In this document: positions 9,407 through 43,122 of the stretch, piece after piece
Layout of the letters: every line of letters starts with the position of its first letter
How positions within the stretch are numbered: the first letter of the stretch is position 1
DNA from: Trichosphaerium sp. ATCC 40318
Lineage: Eukaryota; Protista; Tubulinea
Assembly (NCBI GenBank): GCA_038496445.1
Contig: JALMLS010000268.1
Coordinates: 248,001-312,000, forward strand
Length of the DNA stretch: 64,000 nucleotides
Reading direction: 5' to 3'
Made by a program: the position numbers and the translations under genes
The notes under the pieces: generated by a model
Told to the model about the DNA's origin: nothing
Database searches by the model: none
The model's input: only the letters and a program-made list of their open reading frames with translations

Positions 9407-11223
9407 ATGTCTATTGTAACACCAAAAGTGATCAAAATTATTGCTCAAGAAAAGACAGAATGTACTATTGCTGATAACGTAGCCAAGCAACTCGCAGAGG
9501 ATGCTGAGTATAGAGTGCGCCAAATTATACAGGTACAGGCCCGTTTGCGAAACAACACCACCAACAGCACCGCATAACATCATACAACGCAAATATTTAA
9601 AAATACTACAGGAAGCCGCTAAATTCATGCGGCACAGTAAACGGGATAAATTAATACCCTCTGACATTGACAACGCGTTGAAACAACAAAAAATAGAGGT
9701 AATTACAATGAAAGTTAACGTTTATGCTAAATATTGCCAAAAAGGGCTTATACGGCTACTCTGGGCCCATGAATCATCGTATTGTAACCGTGGCGGGAAC
9801 TAATTTATTCTATCCCTCCTCTGCAGAAGTAACGTTCGCGGATATCATACAAGGCACGCATCAACATCCACGCTCAAAACAAAAACAGTTTGATTGACTG
9901 TTTTGACAGAAAAGCTTCCTCCTACTCCAAGAGCGCCAAGCTTCCAATCTCACTGGCTAGCAATCCGTGGCGTACAACCAAGAATACCACAGAACCCACA
10001 AGAGGCAAGTACAGTGCCAGAAACCAAGACAGAAGAGACGTACGATCCAAAAAAAAAATCAAAAAATCAGTTCGATCAAAATTTATTTTTTTTAATTCGT
10101 TCTAGGCCAAAGACACAAACCAAAGATGGCGTAGAGATAAAACCTCCAGCGAAACACGTCCTATCAAAGGAACTACAGCTTTATTTCACAAAAGTGACAG
10201 AAGCAATTACAGCAGATGAATCGCCTGATGCATTGCGTGAACACGCTCTAAATACTCTAAATTCTGACCCTGGAATTTATCAGCTCTTACCATACTTTAC
10301 ACAGTACATTGCAGAACAAGTAGTCAAAAACTTGCGAAAATTGAAGCTCCTCAAGATGCTCATGAAAATGGCTCATGCCCTACTAACAAACGCTCATATC
10401 CAAGTGGACCCATATGTACGTCATTTTAAGCTATTGAGAGCAATCTAGAAGCAAGTTAACTCAAAATCAAGATTTTTTTATTCAAAAGCTCTGTGGCGTA
10501 CTAACATCGTGTCTGTAGTTACATCAGCTCATGCCTCCAATACTAACGTGTTTGGTTGGTAAACGGCTTTGTGATGAACCAAACGAGGACCATTGGTCGC
10601 TTCGCGATTACGCTGCCAAGTTGTCTGCCTTTATTTGCCAACGGTGAGTACATGAAGCACTTTTTAGTAGTGATAGCTGACATTGACATGGAGGTGGGGA
10701 AAAGTCTACAATGATTTACAACCAAGGATCACAAAAACCTTGATCCTGGCTCTTCTAGAACCTAAAAAACCATTGACTACCCATTATGGCGCAATGAGAG
10801 GATTGGCGGCTATGGGACCTCAAGTCGTTTCTCTTTTATTGCTTCCAAATATTACTGTGTACATTAAACTACTGAGAGACAGTGGTATGCTAAAGTCTGA
10901 TAACTTGTTCAAACGTCAAGAGGCAGAAAAGTGCCATGACACCCTCCTGGTACGCGTAAAAAAACCCTCCAAGAAAAAAAAGAAAAAAAAGTTCCCAAAA
11001 AATCCCAACTGACGGTAACTCTTAGAGGATTTGTGGCGATTTCTTGGCTTGGGTGGCTAGGATTTTTCAAAAAGTTGCTAGTAAATACGACAAAGATAAA
11101 CAAAAAGATGCCCTCAACAAAATTGTTCCAAACTTTACGAACATTTACAAAGAGCTTCAAACTATTTTCGGTGAGAGCTTGCAACCTTATATTCTCCCAA
11201 GCCTCAAGGCCTTTAACATGTAA
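9407..11223 (+). CDS. TAF6: TFIID subunit TAF6
   Basis: LAEDAEYRVRQIIQEAAKFMRHSKR, HWLAIRGVQPRIPQNP, KHVLSKELQLYF, DPGIYQLLPYF, THYGA motifs. Confidence 0.95.
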
Positions 11224-34000: not shown

Positions 34001-35016
34001 CCTTTGGTTCCACCTGTTGTTCTGTGTTTAGCAGATAGCAGTGCTATCGTTGTAGTCCAAGCTCTCAAGTTCCTCCTCAAGTTTAAGAAGCCTGTTACTA
34101 TTCCAGATGATGCTCCAACTACTCTAGACAATCTAGAGAGCAATGAGTTCTATAGGGAGTATGTAATTGATCCAAACAAGATGAGAATACTTGGACTTCT
34201 TAAAAAGAAGATGTGGCGGTTTAATATTGAAATTAAACTTATGGTTCTTAAGCTCCTTGGTGAGACTCCTCATTTACATAAGCACATTGAACTCTTTGAC
34301 CATATTATAAACTCTGAGCGTGTATCTACATTAGTACAACTCTCTGATACTGTACGGTCTCTGGGCCCACAGGCACGTTAATTGCTGGTCTTGTTTTTTT
34401 TTTGACTTTTTTTTAAAAGGTGTTGCAATACATTCCTGGAATCATTCAAGTTGCACAACCTGGTTCTCCAATGGTCAGAAATATGGTTAGACAACTAAGT
34501 ACTTTAAAACTTTCAATTGATTCCGAGAGTATTGCTGAGTTGTTCCCTTTGGAAACAATAACAGCTTTGATTAAAAACAGGGATTCAGGTGTTAGGTAAT
34601 AATTCTGAGAAATTTTGTTCTTATCAACTAATCACTTATAAGGCGTGTTGGTGTTATGCTACTTGGTCATAAGTGTGAAGAACGCCAAAGACATCTATGG
34701 ATGCTAATAGAGAGATGGGTAGACAAGAACTCACGTGTCCGTAGAGAAGGTGCGAAAAGAATTTCTAATTTTTTTTTCTCCATTCGTTTTCTGGCTTTTA
34801 CTGATGGTTATTTGTGTAGTACTTGAAGTTCTTGGAGATATTGGTAAGAGATATCCTAACTATATACCAACAATGATGCAGTCAATCGACACAGACAGTG
34901 GTAATTTGATGGGTGTGTGGAGACATTTGAGTTACTCTTGGCATGATATTATTGCTGCTACTGATGACGAACAAGAGGGTGACATGGCAGCCGCGTACCC
35001 ATTCCAACCGTTTTAA
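28074..35016 (+). CDS. Large NACHT/STAND-like P-loop NTPase with C-terminal HEAT/ARM repeats
   Basis: Walker A LLVGPPCSGKS, Walker-B-like LALFVEGTD, HEAT-like IVPRLVKALGDRDASVQ and VVLCLADSSAIVVVQAL; many short introns. Confidence 0.6.
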
Positions 35017-35431
35017 AGGTTTAGTTCCATTAAGAAGAAGTTATCCTTTTGTTTAATGCGACGGGTGCTACCCAAACAGGACAATCAAAAAGGCGCTATC
35101 CACCCAAATAAAAAAGGCCAAAATAATAACCAAAAAAATATCATCAATTTTGATGAAGCTAAACTAATATTTAATTTGATGCCATTTGGCGCACTATATA
35201 ATAAAGAGTTTGCCCAATGTCGAAATATATCCAAGTTGGATGTTTGAAAGTAATCCTCATATTACAACGGAATCATCAAAACGAAAATGAAGACATTAAA
35301 CAGCGTTTTGCTTTTCATCTCTATCACTTATAGCATTGTTCGTTTCCTTTTCCATGACAAAGCCACAATGCCAGCGTGGTGGGTTACAATACAATTTATT
35401 TTTCTAATATACAACACGTGGACAAAGCACA

Positions 35432-36193
35432 TCATTCACTAGTATAATCATCACTATCATCGTCTTCACTCCAAGGTTCAATTTCATAAAACAACATATT
35501 TGTTAGTTCTTCATCATGCTTTACTTTTTTGCGTTTCATCTCTCTTGCACGTGATTCCCATTTTTCTAGTTTTCTTTTAAGCGTTTTATTCTCTTCCTTT
35601 ACTGTCTTTAACTCTTGTAATTTACGATTGGCTATTTGTTCACGTTTTTTGCTGGATGCGATTTCCTTTTGCAATTCCGCATGTCGCGCTTCAGCTAAAG
35701 CCTAAATGAGCCGTTAGTAGGCTTTACAATGCACTAAAATCAACATTGCAATCAAAAAGAGCCTTTATTCTTTGTGCTAAGTGAGAGAGGGTGAGTCAAA
35801 CATCCTTTTGAGCAGCCTGAGCCCAAAACGGTCTTTGACTCACCCAAGTCTCACATCGCTTCCTCCGCCAGCAATATACCGCAAGCGTTACTCTAGGGAC
35901 CTCGTACACCGAATAAAAGGTATATCGTTGTCTGTAAATCTATACGCGCGCTAAGTGAGAGAGGATAACGCAAAGACTGCTTGAGTAGTTCCCAAAGAGT
36001 CTTTGCGTCACCCAAGTCTCACATCGTTTCCTCCGCTAGCAATATACCACAAGCGTTACTCTAGGGACCTCGTACACGCGATTTACAGGCAAGATACCGA
36101 TTTTAATTACAAAAATGAATTTCGTGCCTTGTAATCATCAAAATTAAGCCGAAACTCTTTCATTTCTGCGTCTATCTTCTGAGCTTTGGACAT
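35432..36193 (-). CDS. Small coiled-coil protein (about 111 aa) with acidic tail; host of the intronic structured RNAs
   Basis: Exon 1 MSKAQKIDAEMKEFRLNFDDYK, donor AAG|GCACGA at 36127, CTAAC branch point and TTTAG acceptor at 35702, in-frame exon 2 ALAEARHAELQKE... Confidence 0.7.
35762..35920 (-). ncRNA. Unknown structured intronic RNA, copy A
   Basis: Own closing stem UUUAUUC/GAAUAAA, long variable hairpin, 70-nt core 67/70 identical to copy B. Confidence 0.7.
35919..36098 (-). ncRNA. Unknown structured intronic RNA, copy B
   Basis: Different closing stem CUGUAAAUC/GAUUUACAG; hairpin shows compensatory changes and G-U pairs only on the minus strand. Confidence 0.7.
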
Positions 36194-36349
36194 GCGCCTC
36201 TACGTTTGAAGTTATTGTATTTTACCGCCAAAAACCCGTTACTTAATTTAACCACAGGTTGACTTATTTAACCAAATTCTACGTTTTTTTCAGGTACAGT
36301 GTTTGTATTTACAGTGTCGTGAGCGTCCGATTTATGTCACAGTATACGC

Positions 36350-37085
36350 TCAAATGTTTTTAGATGCATCCGCGCCATCTACCAGGCAAAAGTCATCATC
36401 GCTCAACTCGCTCTCGTCGCGCTTTACTTGATCTGTTGGTGCTTCTTTCGTGTCCATTGTGGTCTCTGGCTGTTTTATTACCTTGTCGGAGTCCGCAATG
36501 TGAATAAAAGACATAGTAAGAGTAGAAGGCGCTGTTTCTTCTTCTGGTGTCTCAGGGTTTTCTTGTTGTGTTGTGGTAGGTGTTTCTGCCTGTTTTGGCT
36601 CAGTTTGTGGTGGTGTAATTGCGTTCACAACTGCTTTCGTGGAGGATGGGCTTGGAGCCTTTCGTGCCGTATCCGGGCGCTTTGGTGAGGTTTTATTGGA
36701 AGTGTCGCTTTTTGGTGCGTTTTCGAGCGGTTTTACGTCTCTTGGTTGTACAGAGCCCTGTTATTCGTTAGTAATGCTTTTGACGTTATTTTTTGTCTGA
36801 ACGTCGTAAATTTGTAGAGGATGGTGTACCTTTGAAGCATCTCTCTGTGTTACCAATGGTGAGCGTGTCGGAGTTGTCGCACGCTTTTTATTCGTCGTGG
36901 TCGTAGATTCTAAAATCAGTTAGCCCCAAGCGCTCTAAAGCGTAAAAAAATACTAGTTTCGAAAAGTGTAATTCATAGTGGCAATTCGTACTGTTGGACC
37001 GCATCTCATCCTCGCTTGGAGCCGGAAAGAACACTACAACGATAACTATAGCGATTATAAGAGTACCAAAGATGATAAAAAACAT
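36350..37085 (-). CDS. Single-pass membrane protein with T/P/E-rich low-complexity region; start uncertain
   Basis: Hydrophobic FFIIFGTLIIAIVIVVVFF followed by low-complexity exons. Confidence 0.5.
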
Positions 37086-41216: not shown

Positions 41217-43122
41217 TTACTCGTCATCAGAATTGTACAAGGAGATTGAATTGATCCTACTGGTGATTTTACCACCTCTGTAACCGCCACGCTTTTTCTT
41301 TGTTTTTTCGTGTCTGTAACGATCTCCAGATGTGTTTTTAAAAGAGTTGTAAGCACCTTTACCAAAGTCGTCTTCGCCCTATAACGAACAAAATAAGCTT
41401 CTTCAAAAAACTCAAAAAAGTACGCGAGGGTGCGTGAAAAAAAAAAATTGTTTTTCTTTGGCGTACCTTGGCGTGGAAACTGTTGTCTGATAATCTTCTG
41501 TCGTTGAATCTATCTTGTTCTCTTACGCGTTGGTATGTACGGCGTGTGCCTCCTTGGGAACCTGAGCTCATACGTCTATCTTGAACTCTTCCGTCGTTGT
41601 AGGTATCTTCTCTGTTATTGTTGTAAGCTTTTGTTGGTGTTTTTTCTACTTTAGCTGGCTTTTTCTCAACTGGTTTCTTTTCTTCTTTCTTTTCTTTTTT
41701 AGCCGGTTTCTTCTTTGATTCTGACGAGCTAGACGATGATGACGATGATGAACCAGAGTCTGAATCAGAGCTTGAAGAACTAGAAGAGCTTGAAGAGCTA
41801 GAAGAAGACGATTTCTTCTTCGTGGCAGGTGTTTTCTTGTCATCTTTTTTCTTGTCATCTTTTTTCTTGTCTTTCTTTGATTCTGATGAGCTAGACGAGG
41901 ATGAAGATGATGAACTGGAATCAGAGTCAGAAGAGCTTGAAGAGCTTGATGAACTTGAAGAGCTAGAAGAAGATGATTTCTTCTTCGTGGCAGGTGCTTT
42001 CTTGACCTCTTTTTTCTTGTCGTCTTTCTTTGCTTCTGATGAGCTAGACGAGGATGAAGATGATGAACTGGAGTCCGAATCAGAGGAGCTTGAGCTGCTA
42101 GAACTGCTTGATGATTTTTTCTTGGCAGGCGCTTTCTTGTCATCTTTTTTCTTGTCCTTGACATCAGTCATTTTTTCGTCTAACAGATGCATTAGTAAAT
42201 AGCAAAACAAAAAACCAAAAAAACAATAATAAAAATTACCGGAATCAGATGAGTCCGAGCTAGAGCTGTCTGAATCACTATCAGAGCTTGAGCTAGAATC
42301 ACTGTCAGAGCTTGAACTGTTAGAATCACTGTCAGAGCTTGAATCACTGTCAGAGCTTGAGGATGAGCCAGAAGAAGAAGAATCACTTTTCTTTGCGATT
42401 GGTTTTACTGTCTCTTTTGTTGAAGCTTTTGTCTTTTAGGAGTATACGTCAGTACAACAGCTAGCGTGGGACAATATTGGTACATACCTTGGCTTTTTTT
42501 GTGCCGTTAGTTTGTGCGTCTTCCCGTTTCCTCTTTGTACCAGCACCGTCTTTTGTAGCGTCCGTAGCAGATGTCAAAAGTGCCGTGAACCTGTCTTCGT
42601 GTTAAAAATGTTTAAAAACCAGTTATTAGGCGTACCATCTTAGCATTGTTGTGATTTCTGGTACGTCAGAGTCTTTTTTCAAGTTTTTGGCGTTTACGCC
42701 ACATTCTTTCTTAAACGCTGCCAAGGTCTTGGTGAGGCCCGCGTTTGTAAGGAAACTATTAATTAACGGATATACATGCTTTGCAGTTGTGACATCTGCC
42801 AAAAAACAGTTAGTGACGTAGTTTTAGCATAAGGAGTAGTAATAGGAACCAAAGCGAAATACGACGTAAAATAAGAAAAACTTGATAAAAAAAAAATTAA
42901 AACGCGCCAGCAAGCGCTATAGGCGCGTGCAAAGGGACCAGAAAAATTCTGTTCCTTAATGTCGCTTAGGCGTGCACTTCTGAGCGTATACGCACCTTTA
43001 ATGCCATTACCATCGCAGTATTTATTCAATCTTTTAATTGCTTGCACGCTTTGAACGTGACCGGCTTGGGCCAGATCAACGACCTTGGTGAACTCTGTAG
43101 CGAACTTGGTTTCATTGGACAT
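41217..43122 (-). CDS. NOLC1: Nopp140/SRP40-like nucleolar phosphoprotein
   Basis: LisH-like VYPLINSFLTNAGLTKTLAAFKKE, alternating poly-Ser/Lys blocks, SRP40_C-like YRHEKTKKKRGGYRGGKI. Confidence 0.9.
41710..42390 (-). repeat. Coding tandem repeats encoding Ser/Asp and Lys blocks of Nopp140
   Basis: Three near-identical units of about 110-120 nt plus 18-24 nt subrepeats (GAATCACTGTCAGAGCTT). Confidence 0.85.

Follow-up and report, generated by a model that had tools for sequence, protein, structure and literature searches.

Stable RNAs that derive from introns and keep a conserved sequence are, to our knowledge, nearly all small nucleolar RNAs (snoRNAs), small Cajal body-specific RNAs (scaRNAs) or precursors of microRNAs (miRNAs). 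The stable introns of yeast are protected independently of intron sequence or fold and have their 3′ ends downstream of the branch, and human full-length excised linear intron RNAs (FLEXIs) persist at full length. Zipper stems are also an established feature of long yeast introns. In the published literature (10.1101/426049; PMC11460701; PMC10948791; PMC7137253), yeast stable introns are described as spliceosome-protected, with a short distance between branch point and 3′ splice site, and FLEXIs as reaching at most ~300 nt. Here we describe an intron of 426 nt at positions 35702-36127, on the minus strand, of a 64,000-nt stretch of the genome of Trichosphaerium sp. ATCC 40318 (contig JALMLS010000268.1, positions 248,001 to 312,000; the whole stretch is called the window, and coordinates refer to it). 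The intron contains two tandem structured units, termed A and B. A stable, structured RNA derived from this intron exists. With a probability of about one half, it is a functional RNA of a class not yet described, in which an invariant block would form a recognition surface, the helices would be a scaffold and the gene would be mainly a carrier. It is probably a lineage-specific novelty among intronic non-coding RNAs.

Splicing of the host gene and abundance of its intron

The host gene consists of two exons on the minus strand, and the units occupy its sole intron. The coding part of exon 1 (36128-36193) provides 22 codons from the ATG, the N-terminus of the protein P0001, and that of exon 2 (35432-35701) provides 89 codons and the stop. 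The translated product is an orphan coiled-coil protein of 111 aa rich in lysine and glutamate. The intron is spliceosomal, of the GC..AG type with donor GCACGA, and bears the branch-site consensus UACUAAC at 35713-35719, its branch A (35714) lying 12 nt ahead of the 3′ splice site. Its removal exactly at 35702-36127 is directly recorded in the public transcript contig L001, which carries the junction tacaag/gctttag. The same 426-nt skip is joined in RNA contigs of runs X1 and X2, with a leeway of 4 nt in register; of the possible registers, GC..AG alone is near-canonical. The intron has a 4-nt repeat, AGGC, at its boundaries.

An earlier note, made from the sequence alone, had described an oversized GC-AG intron. 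The size is indeed unusual, since candidate introns in the window have a mode of 50-70 nt in a crude scan and the confirmed intron of the upstream neighbour gene (36757-36828) measures 72 nt. The GC donor probably is not. The hexamers GTACGT and GCACGT are over-represented in the window (71 and 44 occurrences, with ~31 expected for a random hexamer; the GC content is 39%), and these counts indicate that donors of the GCACG type are probably common in this genome, so that the host donor is not special. The neighbour intron has the donor GTACAC and the branch sequence TTACTAAC, a UACUAAC-type motif as in the host intron. Positions 1-1139 of L001 (window ~35400-36950) cover the upstream gene, a 156-nt spacer and the entire host gene with both introns gone and with no poly(A) between the two genes; the locus is thus very compact, and its transcripts either read through or overlap. 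The upstream neighbour (36350-36950, minus strand) resembles, at a score below threshold, the transmembrane region of neurotransmitter-gated ion channels.

Searches with the host protein returned self-matches only among 5.8 billion clusters and 1.84 billion representatives, the sole contig found for it being the spliced transcript, and no Pfam family scored above cut-off. The neighbouring 144-aa exon, used as a query for orthologous loci, gave no match. The lack of a homologue for the host open reading frame (ORF) agrees with a gene that is maintained chiefly to host an RNA.

Four public RNA runs (X1-X4, of which X4 is an environmental RNA sample) were aligned to 35000-36900, and abundance was taken from contig word depth. 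In X1 the intron body forms one contig (35728-36081) at depth 48.1, with the host exons at 2 and the upstream gene at 8.9. In X3 it forms a contig (35763-36120) at depth 6.9 and in X4 a contig (35735-35930) at depth 14.5, the host exons being at 0 in both runs and nothing more of the locus being present in X4. The intron body is thus more abundant than the host messenger RNA (mRNA) in three runs, a point that the sequence alone could not have revealed. Run X2 contains none of the intron body, with the host exons at 8 as spliced mRNA and the upstream gene at 91. This pattern fits a poly(A)-selected library, as X2 is presumed to be, in which a non-polyadenylated intron RNA would account for mRNA without intron signal. 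The 72-nt neighbour intron is seen spliced only, positions 35000-35447 are at 0 in X1, X3 and X4, and the intergenic stretch 36216-36279 is at 0 in X1; carry-over of DNA and general intron retention are therefore argued against. Nor does the depth of the X1 contig arise from stacking of the repeated core, since the unique spacers and trailer are part of that contig.

The apparent 3′ end of the accumulating RNA lies at 35728 (minus strand), where the X1 contig of depth 48 enters the sequencing adapter, a junction that needs several fragments terminating at that base. None of the intron contigs of X1, X3 and X4 continues past this position, which follows a predicted terminal helix (described below) by 3 nt and precedes branch A by 14 nt. 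A 3′ limit upstream of the branch, as given by the contig ends, argues for a linear trimmed form, and this is the form that we infer. On the other side, the X3 contig extends to 36120, 7 nt short of the 5′ splice site.

Sequence, pairing and predicted fold of the two units

Units A and B stand head to tail on the minus strand. The core of unit A (35950-36078, 129 nt) comprises an invariant 5′ block, a long hairpin and a 3′ tail ending in UUAGC, and the core of unit B (35776-35910, 135 nt) is its paralogue; a covariance model of the units, R1, gives them 151 and 161.6 bits, respectively. The 5′ block measures 56 nt in each unit (36023-36078 in A, with GAGGUC, AGAGUAAC, GGUAUAUUGC and GGAGGAA; 35855-35910 in B) and is identical at 52 of 56 positions (93%). 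The 6 nt of the hairpin foot are identical, as are all 13 positions of the 3′ end. The 40-nt flanks of the cores agree at 11/40 and 10/40 positions (25-28%), which is the random level. A repeat finder aligned 35823-35909 with 35991-36077 at 91% over 87 nt and a second common block, 35776-35800 with 35950-35974. The invariant core within variable surroundings that the earlier note had described is therefore real (5′ block 93%, 3′ tail 100%, flanks 25-28%). The 70-nt block pointed out there has exactly three differences, all of them transitions (alignment columns 30, 42 and 52), and the 15-mer 35776-35790 recurs at 35950-35964 with no difference. A 26-mer of the core occurs twice in the window, where 0 occurrences would be expected.

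The divergence between the units follows their pairing. In a 12-bp helix beside the hairpin foot they differ at six bases, and 12/12 pairs are retained, as had been supposed when the hairpin was called diverged yet paired. The two double compensatory changes reported for it (G-C to C-G and U-A to G-C) are present, and two changes from G-C to G-U form valid pairs on the minus strand alone, which bears out the strand specificity claimed for the G-U pairs. When six random substitutions were introduced into this helix in simulations starting from unit B, all pairs survived in 0.08-0.7% of cases (p 0.0008-0.007). Across the RNAalifold structure, four pairs are altered on both sides and six on a single side, with no pair lost. 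A formal covariation test with two sequences sits at its floor (31/500 shuffles). All covariation is confined to the long hairpin; being without variation, the 5′ hairpin and the foot are uninformative.

Folding is also asymmetric between the strands. The whole intron has a folding energy of -156.5 kcal/mol in the sense direction (z -7.56) and -122.6 kcal/mol in antisense (z -4.17). Unit A alone reaches -54.3 kcal/mol (z -4.5) on the minus strand and -36.5 kcal/mol (z -1.7) on the plus strand, a sense-strand advantage that fits the G-U pairs present solely on that strand; unit B alone reaches -55.6 kcal/mol (z -3.6). In the minimum-energy structure each unit carries a long hairpin of ~30 bp. 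That of unit A (35955-36022) is predicted as 6 bp, a small internal loop, 16 bp, a mismatch and 6 bp, with pair probabilities of 0.89-1.00, and that of unit B (35781-35854) as 6 bp, an internal loop, 12 bp, an irregular middle and 8 bp, with probabilities of 0.98-1.00 for the main helices.

Each unit had been thought to be closed by a stem of its own, which holds for unit A but has to be weakened for unit B. The 5′ arm (36074-36092) and 3′ arm (35928-35951) of the unit A stem form an inverted repeat (I3, 13 nt at 92%) with a duplex energy of -18.7 kcal/mol. The minimum-energy structure closes unit A with 8+6 bp (36087-36080/35940-35933 and 36079-36074/35951-35946), and the stem of 13 bp plus 6 bp has pair probabilities of 0.67-0.94. 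The weak arms proposed for unit B (5′ arm 35911-35920, 3′ arm 35762-35770) yield a duplex of -8.2 kcal/mol and are absent from the minimum-energy folds. Both units lie within a predicted terminal zipper helix, whose 5′ strand (36101-36127) includes intron bases 1-4 (GCAC) and whose 3′ strand spans 35731-35757. In it, GCAC at 36127-36124 would pair with GUGC at 35734-35731 (probability 1.00), extended by 36118-36116/35742-35740 (0.94) and by the 12 bp of 36112-36101/35757-35746 (0.96).

Some further features accompany the cores. They start with GUACGA (36066-36078; 35898-35910), a sequence similar to GUACGU, the dominant donor of the genome, and to the host-intron donor GCACGA, and finish in a pyrimidine run plus UUAG (35950-35962; 35776-35788), resembling a 3′ splice site. 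Splicing factors might bind to these donor-like and acceptor-like ends. The units were also considered as nested introns, and this was rejected: their interior has no UACUAAC-type branch site and the RNA contigs retain both of them. Runs of 4-5 U stand shortly after each unit's closing stem and one ahead of unit A (35753-35757, 35922-35925, 36111-36115), and AT-rich, TATA-like boxes are found 20-30 nt upstream of each core. Together they resemble signals of the RNA polymerase III type, a resemblance that could be due to chance given the AT-rich intron. As to independent polymerase III genes, A and B boxes are absent, and the contigs connect the units to the intron leader.

No known family was recognised. 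Rfam 15 gave 0 matches over the whole window at the gathering score, and permissive searches (E<=10; 4227 families; 901, 203, 166 and 63 nt) returned generic hairpin noise only, at chance level. The unit B copy of the 5′ block, searched alone, had no match at E<=10. The description of the RNA as unrecognised thus stands at any threshold. A scan for boxes and motifs likewise confirmed the reported absence of C/D, H/ACA and Sm signals. CUGA does not occur on the sense strand, and the sole C-box-like heptamer there (1 mismatch) lies outside the units, at 35746; a terminal stem of the kind that accompanies box C/D is present for unit A only. The internal loops of the hairpins are 3x2 nt, and the hinge/ACA arrangement and the pseudouridylation pocket are absent. 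The placement of ACA is inconsistent, directly after the core in unit B (35775) and 15-19 nt beyond it in unit A, within the closing stem (35935, 35931). Among the H/ACA families of Rfam nothing rose above chance, the best match having 18.6 bits against a threshold of 48 and lying on the opposite strand. A tRNA scan found no tRNA-like gene.

Searches for further copies in the window found none beyond the two units, whether by a 26-mer with 3 mismatches, by BLAST at word size 7 or by R1 with filters off, the last matching the two units and their reverse strands. Core patterns had no match in public collections (two metagenome scans, one bacterial and archaeal genome scan and one viral scan), the 32 viral matches to a 15-mer being chance according to R1 scoring. 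A literature search for the core sequence found nothing. Elsewhere in the window, a clear exon of the TAF6 C-terminal domain lies at 9894-10448 on the plus strand (E 1.9e-32), and a lysine-rich ORF with a serine run at 41359-42210 on the minus strand has a sub-threshold match to the splicing protein SR-25.

Interpretation and alternative explanations

The following course of events is proposed for the stable intron RNA. Splicing at the GC-AG sites would free a lariat, and debranching would make the intron linear. The terminal helix would then halt exonucleases, with 3 nt left protruding at the 3′ end, and the same helix would bury the 5′ end of the trimmed linear intron. In this way the excised intron may escape degradation and accumulate as a highly paired, probably non-polyadenylated RNA, which would be the main product of the host gene. 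Within the terminal helix, which would join the first intron bases to the segment just upstream of the branch site, two modules of ~130 nt would be nested. Each is envisaged as similar to a three-way junction, composed of a closing helix from non-homologous flanks, the invariant 56-nt block with the 3′ tail, and the long hairpin, in which only pairing would be kept. The invariant block may offer a sequence-specific surface to a protein or to another RNA, with the hairpin and the closing helices as scaffolding. The RNA may act in trans as a small ribonucleoprotein (RNP) or guide-like RNA, either as the entire trimmed intron of ~400 nt or as unit-sized pieces after cutting.

Several points weigh against this interpretation. 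The depths are assembler word depths of contigs and not read counts, which leaves local profiles and true ends uncertain, and the 3′ end is based on one adapter-joined contig together with the lack of longer contigs. In X1 the contig goes no further than 36081 and in X4 it covers 35735-35930, so that the final product may be either the whole intron or smaller pieces. The comparison is limited to two paralogous copies within one intron, and the identity of the invariant block could partly stem from gene conversion between them, although gene conversion offers no explanation for the pairing-preserving divergence of the hairpin. Known RNP signatures (C/D, H/ACA, Sm, kink-turn) are absent from the intron. 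The fold of the invariant 5′ block, for which any model is inferential, is ambiguous between a small 4-bp hairpin and a longer RNAalifold hairpin. Either model accommodates the transitions at columns 30 and 42, the small hairpin as changes from C-G to U-A and the longer one as loop and wobble changes. The organism A strain of runs X1 and X3 carries three changes relative to the window in unit A (36042-36046), two of them transitions and one a 1-nt deletion, which convert GGUAUAUUGC to GGCACAUGC; these suit the loop of the small hairpin, whereas the upper half of the RNAalifold hairpin would break. Run X3 also differs at 36089, a position already mismatched in the closing stem of unit A, and unit B has no strain difference in X1 or X3. 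The confinement of the changes to one short segment of unit A and to a site that is unpaired in any case counts in favour of the proposed interpretation.

The assembly from X4 deserves separate mention. It holds only unit B, its flanks and the 3′ trailer, with unit A missing. Either the intron may be cleaved at a site separating its two domains, or the sampled organisms may be polymorphic for unit A.

The fold may instead serve splicing in cis, the zipper stem bringing the 5′ splice site near the branch or the structure hiding the GC donor, with the stable RNA as a by-product. The predicted pairing of intron bases 1-4 with 35734-35731, 17 nt from branch A, is in keeping with this, and the terminal helix together with two closed domains would reduce an effective distance of 413 nt to <20 nt; the closing and terminal helices also derive from non-homologous sequence, as expected if pairing alone matters. 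Such a device is nevertheless unlikely, as it leaves unexplained the 93-100% identity of a largely non-helical 56-nt block and 3′ tail, the retention of the intron in an orphan gene and the 7- to 24-fold excess of intron over mRNA. Less probable still is an intronic cluster of two miRNA-like or small interfering RNA-like precursors, with the mature RNA in the conserved lower arms of the long hairpins. A length of ~30 bp with small internal loops fits the geometry of such precursors, conservation within the hairpins concerns the basal part of the 5′ arm together with the 3′ arm, and Rfam showed weak similarity solely to generic models of miRNA precursors, which scored 12-18 bits where the thresholds are 53-105. 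However, these scores are all at chance level, the most conserved element, which is the 56-nt 5′ block and not part of the hairpin, goes unexplained, and the RNA sequencing contigs represent long intact RNA at high depth in which the hairpins are not depleted. A comparably small chance is given to functionless sequence, either a tandem duplication in decay or the remnant of a mobile or repeated element (introner, short interspersed nuclear element, or similar to a miniature inverted-repeat transposable element) whose depth would be inflated by other copies. The 4-nt repeat at the intron boundaries would agree with such an insertion, but AG/G at both junctions is ordinary splice-site context. 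Extra copies are lacking in the window (by pattern, BLAST and covariance model) and in three public collections, and the high-depth X1 contig spans unique sequence. Flanking inverted repeats that differ around a conserved interior are the opposite of a terminal-repeat transposon, and uneven divergence with pairing-preserving changes is not neutral.

Finally, the earlier note had suggested a ribozyme or riboswitch. Such a role is unsupported, the RNA contigs being uncut through both units and the defining features of the hairpin ribozyme, the family considered here, failing. As ribozymes, the units would be self-cleaving and self-ligating relatives of that family, perhaps with the loop-A-like element of one docking on the loop-B-like element of the other, and we regard this as very improbable. 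When the units were compared with the classical enzyme-strand sequence (PMC5379106), their columns 8-38 aligned with positions 8-42 of that strand, and a stretch of 12 nt, UUGUGGUAUAUU, was identical. The alignment scored 33, against 15.4 for shuffled sequences (standard deviation 2.8; 1/3000 as high). Equivalents of G8, A9, C25, A23, A24 and A38 were found, and AGGUC faces AGGAA across an internal loop resembling loop A with one additional G per strand. Yet one other tile of the window among 2108 scores equally, giving p ~5e-4 before correction for many comparable motifs. Seven nucleotides are invariant in hairpin ribozymes (G+1, G8, A22, A23, A24, C25 and A38), A22 being mutation-intolerant and without variation in 941 natural examples (PMC8216279). 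In the units the equivalent of A22 is U (column 21), the best alignment contains no G+1 in substrate context, the equivalent of A43 is G, and helix 4 is without its 5′ strand (a 3-nt gap in the alignment). The substrate strand is absent, with no helix-2 partner, N/G step or helix-1 partner. The loop-A-like and loop-B-like elements lie 6-7 bp apart on one continuous hairpin, where docking in cis is impossible, and the internal loop of the long hairpin (CUU/UC) has no catalytic purines. The hairpin-ribozyme families of Rfam gave no match at E<=10 in the searches with 63, 166, 203 and 901 nt. Contigs at depth 7-48 cross both sites of predicted cleavage colinearly, none of them showing the back-joint that a 168-nt circle would leave, and the organism A strain has lost the GUAUAUU motif from unit A. 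Natural hairpin ribozymes are known only from RNA replicons and never from DNA (PMC8216279). That the units are their first DNA-encoded relatives, with the loops fused on one hairpin, catalysis (cleavage or ligation) achieved through reciprocal docking of the tandem units and the intron serving to supply the pair, is accordingly also given a very low probability.

Comparison with known systems

The hairpin ribozyme of the type found in the satellite RNA of tobacco ringspot virus resembles the units in that loop-B-like strands, AGAGUAAC and GGUAUAUU, flank a stem similar to helix 3, and in the strands with GUC and GAA; the tandem arrangement also recalls multimeric, ribozyme-bearing repeats. 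The units differ from it in lacking A22, helix 4, the substrate strand and the junction of helices 2 and 3, and no covariance model recognises them.

Long yeast introns such as those with the RPL22 and RPS9 switches (PMC13630204; PMC3315480) likewise contain long-range pairing that apposes the 5′ splice site and the branch site, and the short-intron genome described here also uses a UACUAAC-type branch signal. Those structures, however, are single-copy, act on their own pre-mRNA and are not reported as duplicated invariant modules that exceed the mRNA.

Intronic snoRNAs offer a further parallel, including polycistronic ones with external stems, long non-coding RNAs with snoRNA ends (sno-lncRNAs) and stable lariats that bear snoRNAs (PMC8609340). 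Shared features are two small structured RNAs in one intron, a weakly expressed host without ORF homologues, closing stems formed by non-conserved flanks and an abundance far above that of the mRNA. The units nevertheless have no C box, CUGA, hinge/ACA or pocket and fall into no snoRNA family of Rfam. What is distinctive of this locus is the combination of abundant, structurally constrained and duplicated modules, a 56-nt block without known protein-binding or guide signature, and an orphan host. If a partner were found, the RNA would establish a new class of RNP RNAs hosted by introns, in a eukaryotic lineage that has been studied little.

The last comparison is with stable excised introns, namely the stationary-phase introns of yeast, FLEXIs, sliRNAs from NAP-seq and stable intronic sequence RNAs (sisRNAs). 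As in sisRNAs and FLEXIs, intron depth exceeds exon depth (48 vs 2, 6.9 vs 0 and 14.5 vs 0). The intron RNA described here outlasts its mRNA, is highly structured, is probably not polyadenylated and is apparently linear, with a 3′ end upstream of the branch point. In this last respect it departs from the yeast stable introns, for it ends at the terminal helix; that this helix apparently sets the 3′ end suggests a simple rule by which an intron may escape turnover. It differs from stable excised introns as a group in that it holds two sequence-conserved paralogous modules.

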